64,000 bases of DNA from sequence record NC_061443.1, one strand, 5' to 3'. Position 1 is the first letter of the stretch; the number at the start of each line of letters is the position of its first letter. Shown here in pieces: positions 12,245 through 30,483 of this stretch. Made by a program: the position numbers and the translations under genes. Below the pieces are notes generated by a model. That model was not told the origin of the DNA. It ran no database searches and saw only the letters and a program-made list of their open reading frames with translations.

Positions 12245-13015
12245 ATGAGCAACGTTGATAAAACAATGCCACAAGGTCGCTGGGAATTTAACGAACCAGT
12301 TGCTGCTGTCTTCGATAACATGCTGCAAAATTCTATCCCCTCATACGAGCGTATGCGTGACCTGACCTATCGTCTGGGTCGTCAGTTCGTAACTCCAGGC
12401 ACAGCCATTGTTGACTTGGGTGCGTCACTTGGTCGTGCTATCGAACCGTTCTGTGCTGAGTTCGGCGAGTACATGTATCTTCACGCGGCAGATCGTCCTG
12501 AGCCAGATCGTGAAACAGGCAACCACTACTGCTGTTATGAAGTAGCGCCTGCGATGCTTGAGCGTCTGCGTCAAAATGAAGTGCTGGTCAATGCCAAAGC
12601 TAAAATCAGTAGCGAGTCACTGGTTGAAGTGGACACTTTCCGATTCGACGAGCAGGTTGAATGCTCTTTGATTCTGTCTGTGTTGACTCTCCAGTTCACA
12701 CCGATTGAACATCGCCAGCACATCCTTGAGAAGGTCTATGACAGTCTTGAGAAAGGTGGCGCGTTCATCCTCGTTGAGAAAGTGCTTGGCGACGATAACT
12801 TCCTCGACCGCCTGTTGGTTGATACCTACTACGGCATGAAAGGCAGCAACGGCTACTCGCAAGAATCTATTGCGACAAAACGTAAAGCGCTCGAAGGCGT
12901 ACTGGTTCCTGTGAAAGCCGCATGGAACGAAGAACTGTTGCGTAAAGCAGGCTTCAACCGTGTTGAGTGTTTCTATCGCGATCTGAACTTCGCTGGATGG
13001 ATTGCAGTTAAGTAA
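12245..13015 (+). CDS. cmoA: carboxy-S-adenosyl-L-methionine synthase-like SAM-dependent protein
   Basis: WEFNEPVAAVFDNMLQNSIPSY N-terminus, VDLGASLG SAM motif, LTLQF, LVEKV, KRKALEGV with the conserved CmoA Arg, FAGWIAVK C-terminus. Confidence 0.85.
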   Translation: MSNVDKTMPQGRWEFNEPVAAVFDNMLQNSIPSYERMRDLTYRLGRQFVTPGTAIVDLGASLGRAIEPFCAEFGEYMYLHAADRPEPDRETGNHYCCYEVAPAMLERLRQNEVLVNAKAKISSESLVEVDTFRFDEQVECSLILSVLTLQFTPIEHRQHILEKVYDSLEKGGAFILVEKVLGDDNFLDRLLVDTYYGMKGSNGYSQESIATKRKALEGVLVPVKAAWNEELLRKAGFNRVECFYRDLNFAGWIAVK

Positions 13016-13022
13016 CAAATGC

Positions 13023-13047
13023 GGGTGGCTTCGGCCGCCCCTTGTTG
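13023..13047 (+). terminator. hairpin with weak U tract (possible leaky terminator)
   Basis: GGGTGGC-TTCG-GCCGCCC-CTTGTTG between cmoA and next gene. Confidence 0.5.
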
Positions 13048-13062
13048 CACAGGAGATTAGCA

Positions 13063-13926
13063 ATGGCCAACAAACGCCAAGAACGTTGTGCGTCAATGAT
13101 TCGTGAGTCGTTGATTACCGAAATCAAGAAAGCACGTTCTAAACAACCCTACGTCTTCCTCAGTGGCGGCGTAGACTCAAACTGTATTCTGTTTGCTGCG
13201 CTTGAGGCAGGGTGCCGTCCAATTACCCTTTCATTCCACATGGAAGGCGTTAATAGTCGTGACTTCCGAGCGGCTCAGGCGATAGCAAAAGAGTTTGACC
13301 TTGAGCTGATTGAGGTTGTGCTGCCGAACTCTTATGAGAAACTCAAATCGGATGTGCTGCTTATGGCTGAACGTTATAAGTGTGTGCAGAAAAATGAGTT
13401 CGAATGTTCGTGGCCTATGCTCTATAGCTTCTTCCACGTTCGCAACCATGCGCGTGAGAACGGCATCAAGAACCCTGTGACCTTTACTGGCCAAGGCGCT
13501 GACTTGATGTACCTGTCTTCTAAGAAGGCTAGCATTCACTATAAAGATCGTCCTGATGTGTGGCGTAAAGAAGGTCGCGCTAATCCGCATCGTACTCAAG
13601 GACGCATCCTGCCTCTCATGGCTCGTGATGCGGGCATTCGTAATATTAAGCCTTGGGACAGTGAGGAAATTCTTCAAGCGTTTCTCGGCACGTCATGGGA
13701 AGACGTTAACAAGCCACGACAGAAAGAACCTTCTCGTGCCGCATTCGAAGATTACTTCAAACGCGTTCGAGTATTCAACCATCAGAACTTCCAGCTCGGT
13801 GATACAGGTATCGCAGAGCATTTCGAAAAGCTGTTGGCGGATTCTGAAATGAATCCAGACTTCAAATATAAAAGTGTTGTCGGCGTCTACGGAGAGCTGG
13901 CTCGCGCATACCAGGAAAAATCCTGA
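13063..13926 (+). CDS. asparagine-synthetase-like ATP-dependent amide ligase (no glutaminase domain)
   Basis: PP-loop FLSGGVDS, FTGQGAD (cf. AsnB SGEGADE), KEPSRAAF (cf. K..LR.AF); only 287 aa. Confidence 0.8.
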   Translation: MANKRQERCASMIRESLITEIKKARSKQPYVFLSGGVDSNCILFAALEAGCRPITLSFHMEGVNSRDFRAAQAIAKEFDLELIEVVLPNSYEKLKSDVLLMAERYKCVQKNEFECSWPMLYSFFHVRNHARENGIKNPVTFTGQGADLMYLSSKKASIHYKDRPDVWRKEGRANPHRTQGRILPLMARDAGIRNIKPWDSEEILQAFLGTSWEDVNKPRQKEPSRAAFEDYFKRVRVFNHQNFQLGDTGIAEHFEKLLADSEMNPDFKYKSVVGVYGELARAYQEKS

Positions 13927-14549
13927 TGACAATGATTCATATCATAGACGGTGCAGTTGGTGGCGGTTATGTTTATTCAAAGCTGGTGGATGCAGGCTTC
14001 AATGCTCGCGTACATGCGCCACCCAATCCGAGAGTTCGTGCTGCATACGCGACGTACCCATCACTTTCCATGGGTCACTCGGAGAAAGAGATTGAGCACC
14101 ATATCAGTCAGGTCTTAGGTACTTATCGAGGCCTGTTCTTGATTAGCAGTTACGTTGGTTCACTGATTGCAAACAACATGATCGACATGTGTGGTCAGTC
14201 TGAAAACGTGATCACCTGTGACGACCTCAAGTGTGGTTCCATACCGGTTGTCGCTTCCTCTATTTCTGTAAACGTATATCAGAACCAACGTAAGCTGGCG
14301 CGTATTCATCATCGCTTAAAGCACTTCGACTTCGACCACGAGTTCGCTATTGCTGATCAGGCTGTGCGATTCGCGGCAGGCGATGAATTTGCGAAACAGG
14401 GTGCGCAGCAAGAACTGAACAATCACGCTAAGTTCTTGTCCAGCCCGTCTTTGATTGTTGCCGCACACAAACTCGGTGTGAAGGGCAGCATGTATCACAA
14501 CTATGCAGGTCTGGTGCAAGAGTTCATTGAGAAGCGCCAGAAGCAATAA
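13926..14549 (+). CDS. hypothetical protein, weak likeness to Asp/Glu racemase N-terminus
   Basis: IHIIDGAVGGGYVY versus MurI IGIFDSGVGGLTV; catalytic Cys not seen; coupled to the ligase gene. Confidence 0.45.
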   Translation: MTMIHIIDGAVGGGYVYSKLVDAGFNARVHAPPNPRVRAAYATYPSLSMGHSEKEIEHHISQVLGTYRGLFLISSYVGSLIANNMIDMCGQSENVITCDDLKCGSIPVVASSISVNVYQNQRKLARIHHRLKHFDFDHEFAIADQAVRFAAGDEFAKQGAQQELNNHAKFLSSPSLIVAAHKLGVKGSMYHNYAGLVQEFIEKRQKQ

Positions 14550-14832: not shown

Positions 14833-15288
14833 ATGAATCTGTTTTCTATTTTAAAGCAGCAGGTGAAGAAAGCGCTGTCTACAGAAGCTGCGCATGAGCC
14901 AGAAGTTCGTGCAATGTTTGACTGGCGCTATTCAGTTGATGTTAAAGGTCAGATGTACATCGTAGGTAAGACGGGAGCAAACACCTGCTTCTATGTCGAG
15001 CCTGGTACCGATGAACCTGTAGCGTGTTACCCAGATGCGTTACTGGCAAAGATTGACGAGTGGGGTACAGGCAAGTACGTCTCCTTCGCAATCTACTTCA
15101 AGCGTTTTGAATCTCCTGTGTTTGAAAACATCAAGACGCTTGAGAAAGCGCTGACAGGCAAACCTAAGTCATTCAAGAAAGGTTACTTCTTGTGTGGCCT
15201 GACGCCGAAAGGCAAGCGTGTGAAATTGTACCGACTGCATCAAGGACTGTCTGGTATGCAGTGGGTAGCAGTCGAACCTAAATCTTAA
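14833..15288 (+). CDS. hypothetical protein
   Basis: GAGG RBS, 151 aa. Confidence 0.6.
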   Translation: MNLFSILKQQVKKALSTEAAHEPEVRAMFDWRYSVDVKGQMYIVGKTGANTCFYVEPGTDEPVACYPDALLAKIDEWGTGKYVSFAIYFKRFESPVFENIKTLEKALTGKPKSFKKGYFLCGLTPKGKRVKLYRLHQGLSGMQWVAVEPKS

Positions 15289-16711: not shown

Positions 16712-17554
16712 ATGACAGTAATAAGTCCAATCCGTTATCAGGGCAATAAGCGTAGCCTTATTCCTTTTATTCTCGAACATGTGCCTGACGTGAAAGACTG
16801 TCCGCGCATGGTCGATGTGTTTGGTGGTAGCGCTACTGTCTGTGCGAATATGCCGCAGAAGTTTCGCGTCTACAACGAACTAAGTCCTCAGGTGTATGAG
16901 ATCGTTAAGATGCTTGTCGAGCAGGACCCGAAGAAAACATTGGGTCAAGTCAAGCGTCTGGTACGCCACTGGTGTCTGACGAACAGCAACGAAGAAAACT
17001 ACGATGCGTTCCGTACAGTCCTCCAGAAGAAGCGCACTGCAATCTTGCATTACGTTGCACATCGTCACGCACACTCGAACATGTTGCGCTTCAACCAACA
17101 GGGTGTGTACAACGTAGGCTTTGGTGATCGTGGTCTGATTGGTAAGTTCGATGAACTCGAACACGAACTCACCTCATTCCACCAGCACATGCAAGGCGTC
17201 CACCTGACGAACATGAAGTATGGTAAATTGCTTGGTCGTCTCGGCAATCAACTGGACTGCAACACGTTCTGCTACTTCGACCCGCCTTATCTGGCGAGTG
17301 GTGCAATGCAGTACGGCAAGTGGACCGAAGCCAATGAGCGCAATCTGCTGGCGACGCTTGAGCAACTCAATCGCTTGGGCGTACCGTGGATGTTGAGCAA
17401 TGTTATCGAACACCGAGAGTTCTCGAACGATCTGTTGAAGCGCTGGTTAAAGAAACACGCGACGACCGTGCTCTACCCAAACAAAAGCTATGCGATGAAC
17501 AACGGCCAGAGTGGCTCGCATAGTACGATTGAAATTCTGGCGATGAACTATTGA
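16712..17554 (+). CDS. dam: DNA adenine methyltransferase (D12/Dam class)
   Basis: RYQGNK, DVFGGSATV, FDPPY, WMLSN. Confidence 0.92.
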   Translation: MTVISPIRYQGNKRSLIPFILEHVPDVKDCPRMVDVFGGSATVCANMPQKFRVYNELSPQVYEIVKMLVEQDPKKTLGQVKRLVRHWCLTNSNEENYDAFRTVLQKKRTAILHYVAHRHAHSNMLRFNQQGVYNVGFGDRGLIGKFDELEHELTSFHQHMQGVHLTNMKYGKLLGRLGNQLDCNTFCYFDPPYLASGAMQYGKWTEANERNLLATLEQLNRLGVPWMLSNVIEHREFSNDLLKRWLKKHATTVLYPNKSYAMNNGQSGSHSTIEILAMNY

Positions 17555-24284: not shown

Positions 24285-24588
24285 TCTGCTGGTAAAGATG
24301 TTCGGCCAGAACAAGCCGTTCTTTGTAGTACGTCGGGACGCGATTGTTGAAGAAGGAAAGCGTTTCGGTGATCGTGTCTACTTCTCCAACGGCACTAACA
24401 CTGTTACCGTGCCAAACATTCAGGGGCTCGACCTCGGTGATAAGCTCTACATTGCAGAAGACGGCGATGTGTATGAGTGGCATCCTCACTTCGAGCGCCC
24501 GTACGAAGCAGTATCAAACAACCAGTCAGAAGCTCTGGCGTTTGGTCTGCATCCCATTGTTTTTCATACTGACAGTCGGAACAGCTAA
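24244..24588 (+). CDS. hypothetical protein
   Basis: coupled to thymidylate synthase. Confidence 0.5.
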   Translation: MPTPLILLKQQTRDLLVKMFGQNKPFFVVRRDAIVEEGKRFGDRVYFSNGTNTVTVPNIQGLDLGDKLYIAEDGDVYEWHPHFERPYEAVSNNQSEALAFGLHPIVFHTDSRNS

Positions 24589-25685
24589 TGTCACAACCAC
24601 TTGATCTACGCAATCCAAATCACTACGAACTGTACTCTATTCACAACGTGGACGAACAGTACATCAACCTGTGTGACGCTATTATCGCTACAGGCACGAA
24701 AGAGTCTGACCCTGAGCGCACCACCGACGAGTGGTTGACTATCATCGGTGTCGGCTTCCAGTTGCAGAACACGCACATCGCTTTCCCTGCGCTGCTTGGT
24801 GCACGTAAGAACTGGGTAGCGGCTGTCGATGAAATGTGTTGGATGGCTCGCGGTGAAACGAACATCGAATCCCTGAACTCTAAGATCTGGGATTTGTGGG
24901 CAGACGAATCTGGAGACTGCGGTCCTATCTACGGTGAGCAGTGGCGCCGTTGGCCTGACGTCAAAGCCTTCTTCGACTACACGCAGCCTATGGCATCTTG
25001 CCCTACTGCGGAAGTTATTCGTGCGCGTAATGAAATCCTGCGTATGCGTGAAGACGGCTACATCGAAACTGAACTGACTGATGGTCGCATTCTGTTTGAA
25101 GGTCAGATTGACCAGTTCGTTAATGCTCTGTACCAGATTCAGGCTCGCTCCCGTTCGCGCCGCATCCGTGTTCAGGCGTTCAACCCAAGCTATGTGAACA
25201 TGCAGGGTCTGCCTCCATGCCACACTGAGTTTGAGTTCAACGTAACGAAAGCTACTCGCTACGAACAAGCTCAGGCAGAAGCGCGTGGACAAGCTGTTGC
25301 CGAAGACAGCCTGCACATCACTGTCCAACTCCGTTCCAATGATTGTCTACTCGGACGCCCGTTCAACATCATGGGCTACAGCGCCATGCACCAGATGATC
25401 GCTAAGTGGGCGGGTCTAAACGTCGGCGGCTTCACGCTCAACTCTACCAACACGCATATGTATACGCACCACATCGAAGCGTATCAGACGCAACGTGCCC
25501 AGTGGATGACGCTACGCGAGCGTATGCAGAAAACGGGTGAGCCTGTTAAATACCCTGTGCTCGAAATCAGTGACGACATTCTTGGCCTGACGCCAGAGCA
25601 GTTGCTCGATAACGCGAACGCAGATTGGTTCGAGCTGGTGGACTACAATCCAATGCCAGCAGTAAAAGGACGTGTGACCAAATGA
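24588..25685 (+). CDS. thyA: thymidylate synthase (ThyA type)
   Basis: EMCWMARG, IWDLWAD..GDCGPIYGEQWR, SRRI, LPPCH, QLRSND.LLGRPFN, HMYTHH. Confidence 0.93.
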   Translation: MSQPLDLRNPNHYELYSIHNVDEQYINLCDAIIATGTKESDPERTTDEWLTIIGVGFQLQNTHIAFPALLGARKNWVAAVDEMCWMARGETNIESLNSKIWDLWADESGDCGPIYGEQWRRWPDVKAFFDYTQPMASCPTAEVIRARNEILRMREDGYIETELTDGRILFEGQIDQFVNALYQIQARSRSRRIRVQAFNPSYVNMQGLPPCHTEFEFNVTKATRYEQAQAEARGQAVAEDSLHITVQLRSNDCLLGRPFNIMGYSAMHQMIAKWAGLNVGGFTLNSTNTHMYTHHIEAYQTQRAQWMTLRERMQKTGEPVKYPVLEISDDILGLTPEQLLDNANADWFELVDYNPMPAVKGRVTK

Positions 25686-27650: not shown

Positions 27651-28352
27651 ATGGCAAAAATTGCTAAAACAAAGGAAGGGAAAAAGAGCCACGCGATGAA
27701 GATTGACTTGACGAAATTCAAGACAGCTTCACAACTGAAAGGCGCTGACTATAACCCACGCTTCATTACAGATAGCCGACTTAAAGCACTCGAAAGTTCT
27801 TTGGGTAGCTTCGGCGATTTGTCTGGTATCGTGTTCAACAACAGCGTGAAGTCTGGCGTTCTTGTCTCTGGCCACCAGCGTTTGAAATCCATTGACGGGT
27901 GGAAGACGCGTATTGAAATTCAGAAGACGACTGATAAGTACGGCACTATCGGTCTGGGCTACATCCACGCAACGCATCCGAAGAAGCCTGAGAAGGTTAT
28001 CAGTATCCCGCTTCGTATCGTTAACTGGACGGACAAGAAAACCGAGTATGCTGCGAACATCGCGGCGAACGCTCATGGCGGTGAGTTCGATAACAAGAAA
28101 CTCGCCAAGCTGGTTGAGAAGCTGGACTTGACAACTATCAAGCCACAGTTGCTTGGCCTTGACCCGTTAGAAATTCGTGGGCTGCAACAAAAGCTGAAAG
28201 GTCAGGCTGCCGTTGTCACTCAAGAGCGAGCAGGTAAGACTACAGGCCAGATGAACGGCAGTAGTGGTTCGTTCAAAGAGTACGGCACTGACGAAGTTGG
28301 TGAGAGCCTGAACTGCACCTGCCCGCGTTGTGGATTTAAGTTCGAGGGATAA
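27651..28352 (+). CDS. ParB/sulfiredoxin-like domain protein with C-terminal zinc ribbon
   Basis: DYNPR, FGDLSGIVFN, VSGHQRLK, ANIAANAHGGEFD, CTCPRCGFKF. Confidence 0.8.
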   Translation: MAKIAKTKEGKKSHAMKIDLTKFKTASQLKGADYNPRFITDSRLKALESSLGSFGDLSGIVFNNSVKSGVLVSGHQRLKSIDGWKTRIEIQKTTDKYGTIGLGYIHATHPKKPEKVISIPLRIVNWTDKKTEYAANIAANAHGGEFDNKKLAKLVEKLDLTTIKPQLLGLDPLEIRGLQQKLKGQAAVVTQERAGKTTGQMNGSSGSFKEYGTDEVGESLNCTCPRCGFKFEG

Positions 28353-28353
28353 T

Positions 28354-30483
28354 ATGATCATCAAGCCGCCTACGATGAAGGAAATCAACAAGCTGGATAA
28401 ACCCTGGCGTGGTATGAGTTTCTTCGCAGGTTGCGGTGGGTCTTCTACCGGCCACAAGATGGCCGGTATCAACATCCTGTTGAGTAACGAGTTCGTGGAC
28501 TCTGCCCGCGAATCCTATGAAGCGAATCACCCAACCACAAAAGTGCTGCCGCATGATATTCGTCGTCTGGACCCAAGCAAGCTCATGCGTTATTGCGGGC
28601 TGGCAAAAGGCGAACTGGATTTACTTGACGGCAGTCCTCCATGCTTTACCGAAGACACCATCATTCATACAGCAGACGGCATGAAGTTCATCTCGGACAT
28701 GAATGTCGGCGATCAAGCAATGACCTCAGTCGGTCGTTACTTCCCTGTGTACGATACAATGGTTCGTCCATACGTCGGCACAATGCACAAAGTCGAAACG
28801 CTGTTGGGCGCAAATAACGCAACGCCTGAGCATCCATTCTTCGTAAGACGTAACACTGCTCCTGGTGAGTACGGCGAACCGTTCTGGTGTGATGCGAAAG
28901 ACGTGCAGGAAGGTGATCTGGTCGGTACTCCACGCACGACTCCTGATATGGGTCTTGCTGTGTACGAAGACCAGCTGGCTCAACTGCCTAAGCAGATCGC
29001 CGAGTGGGTAGTGTTCCCTGAGTTCTGGTGGATGATTGGTCACTGGTGCGACCGTGGTTCGATTGAAACTGTTAGCGGCGTTGAAGTCGTTAGCTTTGAA
29101 TCTCATTCCAGCCTTGAGAACGCAATGATTGAGCAGTCGTTTGACGCGCTTAAAATCAGTAGCCTGAATCGTATCGACACAAAGACAGCACAACGCAAAA
29201 CGTTCCGTATCGTTATGGACGCAGAGCTGGTGCAGTTCTTACGTCGCTTCGTGTCTCAAGGTAACAATCGTTTCTCTCGCCGTCTGCCTGCAATGATCTT
29301 TCACTTGTCGCCTGAGTTGAAGCAACAATTCATCTTAGGCTGCGCTGGTCATGACTACGTGACTGCGATGGGCGCTAGTCTGTCTATCACATCAGAGAGC
29401 CGTCGCTTCCTGATTGAGATGAACTACCTGTGCTGTTCAGCGTTCAACAGACCTCTGTTTGACGGACTGATTTGGGGCGACGTTTACTTCGGTAGCTCCA
29501 TGACTCCTCGTGAGCGCAACAGTGCCAAGCCTCTTATTGGCTATTTGTTCCTGCAGGACGAGCCGCATTACTTCTTCGAGTTCTCTGATACTGATCCTCA
29601 CATCTGGGTTGAAGTAATTGAGAACCTCGCGTATCAGGCAACCTGTGACGTGTACAACTTCTCCGTTGAGACGGACGAGACATACGTTGCAAACAGCGTG
29701 GTCGTTCACAACTGCAAAGGTTTCTCTACTGCTGGTGTGAAGGAAGAAGGCTGGGGCAAAGAGGTGAAGTACAGCGACAACAAGTATCAGCAGGTAGATG
29801 ACCTGTTCGATCAGTATTGTCGTATGCTGGGCGGGATGCAGCCGAAAGTGTTCACTGCGGAAAACGTTAGCGGCCTCGTTAAAGGTGCGTCGAAAGGCTA
29901 CTTCCTTGAAATCATGAAGGAGTTCGACAAGCTGGGCTACTACGTCCGGGCGCCAATGCTTAATGCTGCGTGGCTTGGTGTGCCTCAGTCTCGTGAGCGT
30001 ATCATCTTTATGGGTGTACGCAAAGACGTTGCCCATGCGCTTGGATATAAGACGGCTGCTACTGCTGTGCCTGACGTTGTACCGTGTGACAGCATGGCGT
30101 TTCTTGCCGATGCTCTGCCGAACATCCTGCGTTACAAATCAACGAAGAAAGATATCATCACGTATCTTCCTGCGATGAACGGTCCGATGCCTACGATTAC
30201 TGCCGCCGATGCGATTGCATACGAGACTGCGCGTTTCTCGTCTGCTGGCTTCGTCGAAGATAACAAAGGTCATCGACGCAAGCTGACTATTGATGAACTC
30301 AAAGTTATCTCTGGGCTGCCGTCAGACTACAAACTGAAAGGCAAGTTCGAAGAACAGTGGGAACGTCTTGGTCGTATCTGTGTGCCTGCAATGACACACG
30401 CTGCGGCTAAAGCGTTAATCGAACACGTCCTGATTCCTTATGCGAAGAAGCGTAAGAAGAAGCCTGGCGATATCTTTAAGTAA
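28354..30483 (+). CDS. C5-cytosine methyltransferase homologue, predicted DNA carboxymethyltransferase, intein-containing
   Basis: motif I FFAGCGGSS, motif IV GSPP-C, VI ENVSGL, VIII QSRERI, IX RKLTIDE, motif X WERLGRICVP (Arg for canonical Asn). Confidence 0.85.
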   Translation: MIIKPPTMKEINKLDKPWRGMSFFAGCGGSSTGHKMAGINILLSNEFVDSARESYEANHPTTKVLPHDIRRLDPSKLMRYCGLAKGELDLLDGSPPCFTEDTIIHTADGMKFISDMNVGDQAMTSVGRYFPVYDTMVRPYVGTMHKVETLLGANNATPEHPFFVRRNTAPGEYGEPFWCDAKDVQEGDLVGTPRTTPDMGLAVYEDQLAQLPKQIAEWVVFPEFWWMIGHWCDRGSIETVSGVEVVSFESHSSLENAMIEQSFDALKISSLNRIDTKTAQRKTFRIVMDAELVQFLRRFVSQGNNRFSRRLPAMIFHLSPELKQQFILGCAGHDYVTAMGASLSITSESRRFLIEMNYLCCSAFNRPLFDGLIWGDVYFGSSMTPRERNSAKPLIGYLFLQDEPHYFFEFSDTDPHIWVEVIENLAYQATCDVYNFSVETDETYVANSVVVHNCKGFSTAGVKEEGWGKEVKYSDNKYQQVDDLFDQYCRMLGGMQPKVFTAENVSGLVKGASKGYFLEIMKEFDKLGYYVRAPMLNAAWLGVPQSRERIIFMGVRKDVAHALGYKTAATAVPDVVPCDSMAFLADALPNILRYKSTKKDIITYLPAMNGPMPTITAADAIAYETARFSSAGFVEDNKGHRRKLTIDELKVISGLPSDYKLKGKFEEQWERLGRICVPAMTHAAAKALIEHVLIPYAKKRKKKPGDIFK
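28642..29712 (+). mobile_element. intein (357 aa) with degenerate LAGLIDADG endonuclease
   Basis: starts CFTEDT, block B ATPEHPF, ends VYNFSVETDETYVANSVVVHN followed by Cys; endonuclease helices read MIGHWCDRGS and FILGCAGHD. Confidence 0.92.

Follow-up and report, generated by a model that had tools for sequence, protein, structure and literature searches.

We analysed the first 64,000 nt (positions 1-64000, hereafter the window) of the genome of Erwinia phage pEa_SNUABM_2 (NC_061443.1), a jumbo phage of 265 kb from the genus Alexandravirus, with the focus on two adjacent plus-strand genes, gp017 and gp018, both labelled 'hypothetical protein' in RefSeq. The first gene (13063..13926) encodes a CmoY-type ATP-dependent (AMP-forming) amide ligase without a glutaminase domain, assigned by Pfam matches, homology to the characterised ligase SpCmoY, a PHROG match and a ligase tree, in which it falls in a clade that we call ligA1. 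The second gene (13926..14549) is translationally coupled to the first and encodes a truncated protein of the glutamate racemase fold, with Ser at both catalytic Cys positions, representing a family that we call A1. Gene structures, homologies, fold, residue substitutions, selection, synteny and module co-occurrence were established directly, the last two in a set of 29 related loci tabulated from GenBank phages, IMG/VR and assemblies. On balance, we lean towards a reading in which gp017 and gp018 are part of a CmoA-CmoX-CmoY cytosine hypermodification locus and gp018 is neither a racemase nor the protein that chooses the amine. We hold the assignment of the pathway and of the ligase to pEa_SNUABM_2 with high confidence; any direct role of gp018 in DNA modification is conceivable but falls somewhat short of probable.

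The core of this pathway is already published, and the new side lies in the series of swappable ligase cassettes and in the Cys-less fold family of gp018. CmoA-CmoX-CmoY hypermodification was described in December 2025 for Synechococcus phage S-B43 (Yang et al., Nat Commun 2025; PMC12783734). In that phage, CmoA makes carboxy-S-adenosylmethionine (carboxy-SAM, Cx-SAM). CmoX, a homologue of C5-methyltransferases with an SPPC motif and Arg350 as hallmarks, then transfers the carboxymethyl group to C5 of cytosine, and CmoY, a glutaminase-less homologue of asparagine synthetase, uses ATP to couple glycine to the resulting carboxylate, which yields 5-glycylcarboxymethylcytosine. Arg350 of SpCmoX binds the carboxylate of Cx-SAM, whereas ordinary C5-methyltransferases have Asn at this position, and the S-B43 trio was shown to modify DNA (PMC12783734); the S-B43 system was also reconstituted in E. 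coli. According to the same authors, ligases of other clusters probably accept different amines, those phage ligases that are presumed to act with ammonia possess a glutaminase domain, and a ParB-domain gene is a frequent neighbour of these systems (PMC12783734). The glycine amide is the one ligase product known for this route. In mass spectrometry, [M+H]+ was published as 286.1 for 5cxmdC and 343.1 for the glycine amide; calculated from these values, a plain amide would have about 285.1, an alanine amide 357.1 and a glutamate amide 415.1.

The ligase and the putative carboxymethylation enzymes

The gp017 protein is 287 amino acids (aa) long, and an AGGAG sequence is located 5 nt upstream of its ATG. 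It contains the motifs SGGVDS (residues 34-39) and TGQGAD (residues 142-147), and its Pfam matches were exclusively to synthetase-type PP-loop domains, namely Asn_synthase (E 5.4e-9, residues 31-159), QueC and NAD_synthase. No Pfam match to a glutaminase domain was detected in gp017, and a length of 287 aa leaves no room for one. An earlier sequence-only reading of this DNA, made by a model, had described the open reading frame (ORF) 13063-13926 as the synthetase half of an amide ligase lacking the glutaminase, and our results agree. Similarity to SpCmoY amounted to 34% identity over 240 aa (E 8e-37), and PHROG 26038 was matched with E 2e-64; in the ligase tree, the ligA1 clade of gp017 differs from the SpCmoY clade. 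SpCmoY (271 aa) is equally devoid of a glutaminase domain, so this state is normal for CmoY-type ligases. Without the domain, gp017 needs free ammonia or an external amine, as had been proposed from the sequence. The further suggestion that the adduct might be larger than a plain amide has gained plausibility, since SpCmoY, a ligase of the same glutaminase-less kind, uses glycine (PMC12783734).

Immediately upstream of the ligase gene lies gp016 (12245..13015, plus strand), encoding a CmoA-like carboxy-SAM synthase, the presumed source of the carboxymethyl donor. It matched the CmoA model TIGR00740 with E 7.8e-43 and 146.9 bits (curated cut-off 193.3) and PHROG 4752 with E 1e-81, and shared 30% identity with the biochemically characterised SpCmoA (E 2e-29). 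The third enzyme is encoded 15 kb downstream of these two genes, within the same window, by gp045 (28354..30483, plus strand), an intein-split homologue of CmoX-type DNA cytosine C5-carboxymethyltransferases identified by PDB and Pfam matches. Its best PDB match was SpCmoX (8yf3, E 6.6e-54), and the Pfam DNA_methylase domain was recognised with E 2.6e-38. The gp045 segment ERLGRICVP aligned with ERVGRMVPP of SpCmoX, placing an Arg at the position equivalent to R350. A CmoX homologue with this Cx-SAM-binding Arg is kept in all relatives of the phage, and a motif scan of the 265-kb genome revealed no C5-methyltransferase candidate besides gp045.

The GSPPC motif of gp045 is also present but is complete only if the intein splices. 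The intein (357 aa; 28642..29712, plus strand; Intein_splicing and Hint_2 matches) is inserted directly before the catalytic Cys, with the boundaries GSPP / C...VVHN / CKGFS. Its +1 residue is the catalytic Cys itself, aligned with C98 of SpCmoX; the N-extein covers positions 3-70 of the DNA_methylase profile, and the C-extein begins at position 71. Owing to this location, the activity of gp045 should depend on protein splicing. A full-length intein is kept in all Erwinia and Dickeya relatives (75-100% identity). Immediately upstream of gp045 is gp044 (27651..28352, plus strand), a ParB-like gene (PHROG 620, E 2.5e-31); the ParB-CmoX pairing is also found in Pseudomonas phage PaBG.

The window thus resembles the S-B43 system in possessing homologues of all three enzymes (30% identity for CmoA, 34% for CmoY and 31% for the C-extein of CmoX), a glutaminase-less ligase, the SPPC motif, the carboxymethyl-binding Arg and a ParB-like gene adjoining CmoX. 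It differs from S-B43 in that CmoX of pEa_SNUABM_2 is separated from CmoA and the ligase by 15 kb and carries an intein at the catalytic Cys, that gp017 belongs to another ligase clade, and that the ligase gene is followed by the racemase-fold gene gp018. Moreover, the pEa_SNUABM_2 locus is built as a cassette that is exchanged in sister phages for versions with different accessory enzymes.

The presence of a CmoA homologue could also be taken to mean that CmoA and the ligase act on transfer RNA (tRNA) or another RNA instead of DNA, given that bacterial CmoA serves tRNA cmo5U synthesis and that both RefSeq and PHROG label gp016 as a tRNA methyltransferase. We consider this highly improbable. 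The CmoX-type homologue with the Cx-SAM-binding Arg accompanies the system in all relatives, and the genes for CmoA, the ligase and CmoX are mutually adjacent in PaBG, S-B43 and Staphylococcus phage F1, the S-B43 trio being the one shown to modify DNA. The paper reporting the PaBG genome contains no experimental data on DNA modification in its text.

We infer the chemical steps, the splicing of the intein, the identity of the amine and whatever role gp018 may have, for the pathway steps from homology to the enzymes assayed in S-B43. Carboxy-SAM would be provided by gp016. The gp045 protein would excise its intein, restoring the GSPPC active site, and would transfer the carboxymethyl group onto C5 of cytosine in phage DNA. 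The carboxymethyl carboxylate would then be adenylated by gp017 and joined to a free amine, most likely a small host alpha-amino acid (as is glycine for SpCmoY) rather than ammonia. Since ligA1 is unaccompanied by a dedicated supplier gene, its amine most likely comes from the common metabolites of the host, for instance glycine or a different amino acid, and by analogy with SpCmoY an external amine larger than ammonia appears likely.

Were gp017 to use free ammonia after all, the product would be the amide 5-carbamoylmethylcytosine. Glutaminase-less members of the asparagine synthetase superfamily can use ammonia, and no amine-making gene occurs with clade ligA1, both of which would fit. However, the sole characterised relative of gp017 uses glycine, and ammonia is the less likely substrate because the phage ligases that putatively use it carry a glutaminase domain (PMC12783734), which gp017 lacks. 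We therefore judge the simple amide to be a rather improbable product.

The racemase-fold protein gp018

The stop codon of gp017 (TGA, 13924-13926) and the start codon of gp018 (ATG, 13926-13928) overlap by one base as TGATG, in agreement with the translational coupling noted in the sequence-only reading. The gp018 protein is 207 aa long, with the N-terminus MTMIHIIDGAVGGG. Neither gp018 nor its close homologues had a match in scans of Pfam (including Asp_Glu_race), NCBIfam (including TIGR00067) and PHROG. Homology searches identified 18 close relatives and three distant clusters, none of them from outside the related jumbo phages, and an exhaustive profile search of 1.84 billion representatives returned five related clusters only, likewise all from jumbo phages.

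The relationship to glutamate racemase (MurI) emerged via a second family, A2, founded on a 190-aa gene (gp254) that lies between the ligase gene and the gp018 homologue in Yersinia phage fHe-Yen9-02. The 13 sequences of A2 share the invariant motifs VFDSGAGG, FPFGxKS, CACNTMSL and LGSTH. A profile of the family matched glutamate racemase 2jfn in PDB (E 2.7e-7) and TIGR00067 (E 1.7e-6, far under the cut-off). The profile was needed for the MurI match, as a phmmer search of PDB with a single A2 protein returned antibody noise only. When the gp018 family was compared to A2 using hhalign, the two were aligned over 180 columns with 93.9% probability (E 1.5e-7). In the family tree, A1 and A2 formed separate clades, with a bacterial MurI joining the A2 side, and gp018 is an old paralogue of A2. 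The two have in common their locus, their shortened length and a Ser at the second catalytic Cys position. Unlike gp018, however, A2 retains the first catalytic Cys and most of the Glu-binding motifs, matches MurI directly and travels only with the ligase clade ligA2, and it is a better candidate for an amine supplier than gp018.

No A2 relatives were found in IMG/VR, and scans of metagenomes and genomes yielded only two further short phage-like contigs in addition to ordinary bacterial MurI. Two short contigs from a Raoultibacter metagenome-assembled genome (MAG), one of them at L045:812-1983, are fragments of an Alexandravirus-like phage with the ligase, A2, gp018, gp019 and gp020; in one of these contigs, both the A2 match and the gp018 match are broken into two parts, by frameshifts or assembly errors.

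A structure of gp018 was predicted with AlphaFold. With the 18 close homologues as the alignment, the model had a predicted local distance difference test (pLDDT) score of 54, and the Foldseek result obtained with it was meaningless and was discarded. With a combined A1 and A2 alignment, pLDDT rose to 92.8 and the predicted template modelling (pTM) score was 0.89. The top 10 PDB matches and the top 30 Swiss-Prot matches of this model in Foldseek were all glutamate racemases, and VIA-align comparison to MurI gave Z 11.9-14.8 over 167-189 residues, while unrelated matches reached approximately Z 8. The model corresponds to MurI residues 2 to ~223, and the last ~40 residues are absent. Judged by profile comparison and by the predicted model, the racemase resemblance of gp018 is real rather than a chance motif. 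A different candidate identity, an alpha/beta hydrolase, came from an ESM Atlas feature search (score 0.91, 148 shared features); it was ruled out because the family has no conserved His and the confident model matches racemases only.

The residues on which MurI relies are replaced in gp018. The first catalytic Cys, in the ACNT motif, corresponds to Ser75, as it does to Ser in 22/22 A1-type sequences, and the Asn-Thr that follows it is replaced by Tyr-Val. The second catalytic Cys corresponds to Ser173, with Ser present in all 35 aligned sequences of A1 and A2. The GCTH motif around it reads S173-P174-S175, so that the adjacent His (His186 of MurI) has become Ser175. The Asn-Thr and Pro-Tyr-Gly substrate motifs are lost as well. 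Compared with MurI (PDB 3isv, 2jfn, 2dwu), gp018 has kept the two-domain fold, the N-terminal Asp of FDSG and the Ser of ACNTAS, but it is considerably shorter (207 aa versus ~265 aa) and is not detected directly by any family hidden Markov model. With both Cys, the His and the two substrate motifs gone, racemisation by gp018 is unlikely, and the protein very probably represents a racemase fold without racemase chemistry, though it may bind an amino acid. The sequence-only reading, which had seen a likeness to the glutamate racemase N-terminus but no obvious catalytic Cys, is borne out on both counts. The ratio of nonsynonymous to synonymous substitution rates (dN/dS) of gp018, 0.06-0.15, is similar to that of CmoA, which signifies purifying selection and no decay.

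Cassettes of related phages and the place of gp018

The order of genes at the locus is constant among the relatives: gp015, CmoA, a variable cassette, the gp018 homologue, gp019, gp020 and Dam. A maximum-likelihood tree resolved the ligase clades with full support, and each clade possesses one accessory set. Clade ligA1 has no accessory gene and is found in pEa_SNUABM_2, SNUABM_35/36/39/30, phB78, several metagenomic contigs and SNUABM_5, the last with a distant A1. Clade ligA2 (~53% identical to gp017) is accompanied by the mini-racemase A2 in fHe-Yen9-02, L017, L020 (a close relative of pEa_SNUABM_2), L044 and L045. Clade ligB (24% identical to gp017) occurs with a DgcN-like protein in AD1, Alexandra and others, and with a 420-aa protein, a DgcN-like protein and an alanine-racemase-like protein in SNUABM_1, 3 and 17. 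Clade ligC (35% identical to gp017) is paired with a 2-oxoglutarate (2OG)-Fe(II) oxygenase in Y3 and in Yoloswag, the latter without a gp018 homologue.

Cassette modules move between backbones. The association of ligC with the oxygenase was recorded at L011:3768-4406 (Y3), L014:5053-5694 (Yoloswag) and L047:4745-5392 (Sen-NF, an unrelated Salmonella phage record). As it is constant, it suggests an oxidised (hydroxylated) adduct. Likewise, ligA2 and A2 were found together at L021:5145-6588 (JGI contig Ga0485749_000005, 218 kb), on a different backbone and with no gp018; no cmoA was present within 6 kb of this pair, which is followed by an ORF-free stretch of 1.1 kb. The DgcN-like (DUF1611) gene lies between cmoA and a very different ligase at L003:7004-8059 (Dickeya phage AD1) and L013:2202-5436 (pEa_SNUABM_1). 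DgcN is reported to be the key gene in a D-glutamate pathway (PMC12363236). The 420-aa cassette gene of the pEa_SNUABM_1-type loci had no family match. The genes most readily suspected of producing or modifying the amine are those accessory genes whose presence follows the ligase clade; several of them resemble D-amino-acid enzymes, which suggests amino-acid adducts, possibly of D-amino acids, in the sister phages.

The position of gp018 follows the backbone instead. It is the first gene after the cassette in every tabulated locus that bears the family (28/29 loci, counting partial matches in L044 and L045), and gp018 proteins of one type (70-75% identical) follow ligases that are only 24% identical to gp017. 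Divergence of gp018 tracks divergence of the backbone (r 0.92), beyond which a slight link to the type of ligase remains (p 0.002, uncorrected for phylogeny). A gp018 homologue is absent despite the presence of a ligase from Yoloswag, PaBG, S-B43, Staphylococcus phage F1, Sen-NF and L021. Two genes of similar length, one of 203 aa that follows the ligase gene in PaBG and one of 206 aa close to that of Sen-NF, proved not to be homologous to gp018. Taken together, what the sequence-only reading had observed holds, and its interpretation finds partial support.

The same reading had proposed that gp018 supplies, binds or selects the amine of gp017. The protein might, for example, hand over glutamate or another acidic amino acid, possibly in the D form, and the result would be an undescribed, gp018-dependent adduct. 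The racemase fold with its conserved polar pocket (D8, S75, S79, S173), the translational coupling to gp017 and a weak tendency of gp018 to covary with the type of ligase are in line with this proposal, as is the recurrence of D-amino-acid enzymes in sister cassettes (A2 mini-MurI, Ala-racemase-like, DgcN-like). There is also a parallel in peptidoglycan synthesis, where MurI, a protein of the racemase family, stands beside MurD, an ATP-dependent carboxylate-amino acid amide ligase, much as gp018 is encoded next to gp017. However, MurD has the Mur-ligase fold and is ADP-forming, while gp017 is an AMP-forming PP-loop enzyme, and the catalytic Cys is missing from gp018. The loss of catalytic and substrate motifs and the persistence of gp018 unchanged while ligases as little as 24-35% identical are swapped both argue against supply or selection. 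In the ligA2 loci, where a supplier seems to be needed, a separate Cys-bearing paralogue is present beside the gp018 homologue. In sum, because gp018 is anchored to the backbone, is absent from at least one relative and has lost the catalytic and substrate-binding residues, its making or choosing the amine is unlikely, and we give the proposal of a gp018-dependent adduct little credence.

A broader version of this idea would be that, in the Erwinia/Dickeya/Yersinia jumbo-phage clade, the carboxyl group attached to cytosine is elaborated with D-amino acids in the manner of peptidoglycan, giving several undescribed bases. Here gp018 would be a Cys-less, racemase-derived subunit that binds or presents the amino acid or acts on the DNA adduct, and the base of pEa_SNUABM_2 would also be new. 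We regard this scenario as speculative and on the whole unlikely.

Alternatively, gp018 might have nothing to do with DNA modification. It could be a racemase-derived host-takeover protein, for instance an inhibitor of host gyrase or a modulator of host MurI and the supply of cell-wall precursors, which came to its place by duplication of A2. In E. coli, B. subtilis and mycobacteria, MurI also acts as a gyrase inhibitor, in a manner uncoupled from racemisation (PMC10886550), a precedent for a racemase-fold protein with a second function independent of racemase catalysis. Purifying selection on a protein whose catalytic residues are gone would be explained, as would its constancy across ligase clades, its absence from PaBG, Yoloswag and L021, and the functioning of CmoA/X/Y in S-B43 without it; the phage also encodes its own type II topoisomerase subunits. 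On the other side, the gene overlaps the stop codon of gp017, and wherever the family is present in the tabulated loci, it directly follows the cassette. Furthermore, gyrase inhibition was shown only for full-length bacterial MurI (PMC10886550), and gp018 lacks the last ~40 MurI residues. We consider a host-takeover role rather unlikely.

We return to the reading that we favour, in which gp018 belongs to the hypermodification locus as neither racemase nor amine chooser. As a part of the phage backbone that borders the cassette on its 3' side and stays the same whichever ligase is present, gp018 would be a ligand-binding or regulatory accessory for something common to all cassettes, or a re-used relic. 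Several points weigh against this reading or parts of it. The identity of the modified base, the motif in which it occurs and the amine are inferred; the CmoA score of gp016 is under the NCBIfam curated cut-off; and the splicing of the gp045 intein is assumed from intact boundary residues only. That gp017 and gp018 are translationally coupled may point to a connection in function. Ser is invariant at both former Cys positions across lineages ~25% identical, and together with the weak residual covariation of gp018 with ligase type this means that gp018 may do more than we propose. Given the coupling and the invariant Ser residues, gp018 may bind a ligand or act as a regulator in the pathway. 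Finally, C98 of the gp018 family is conserved in 21/22 A1-type sequences and could conceivably be a relocated catalytic residue.

The genomes of these phages are a natural near-isogenic series with the ligase cassette as the main difference, ideal for matching genes to DNA adducts, and their accessory genes, the D-amino-acid-like enzymes and the oxygenase, point to adducts so far unseen on DNA. As an enzyme fold kept under selection after the loss of catalytic residues, gp018 poses an accessible question about pseudoenzymes in phages. The phages are also used in biocontrol cocktails against fire blight, and DNA modification bears on host range and resistance to restriction.

Other features of the window

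A GC-rich stem-loop with a UUCG loop (13012..13048, plus strand; -20.8 kcal/mol) was predicted between cmoA and the ligase gene. It is not followed by a T-run and was not called in a terminator scan; compared with shuffled sequences, its stability was weak and not significantly better (z -1.79).

The gene gp020 (14833..15288, plus strand; 151 aa) may encode another component of the modification module. It had no family match in Pfam or PHROG and no Atlas lead, and its homologue in PaBG (L016:4512-4964; 34% identity, E 1e-25) is located between cmoA and the ligase gene.

The product of gp040 (24588-25685), in which we saw no sign of a hydroxymethylase competing for C5 of cytosine, belongs to the thymidylate synthase family and passes the TIGR03284 cut-off; at 365 aa it exceeds the usual length by ~100 aa. 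A Dam-like D12 N6-adenine methyltransferase is encoded by gp024 (16712-17554), which lies a few genes downstream of the cassette. Its possible use of Cx-SAM to form N6-carboxymethyl-adenine was considered and was dropped once the CmoX homologue with the Arg signature had been found; gp024 is kept in all relatives.

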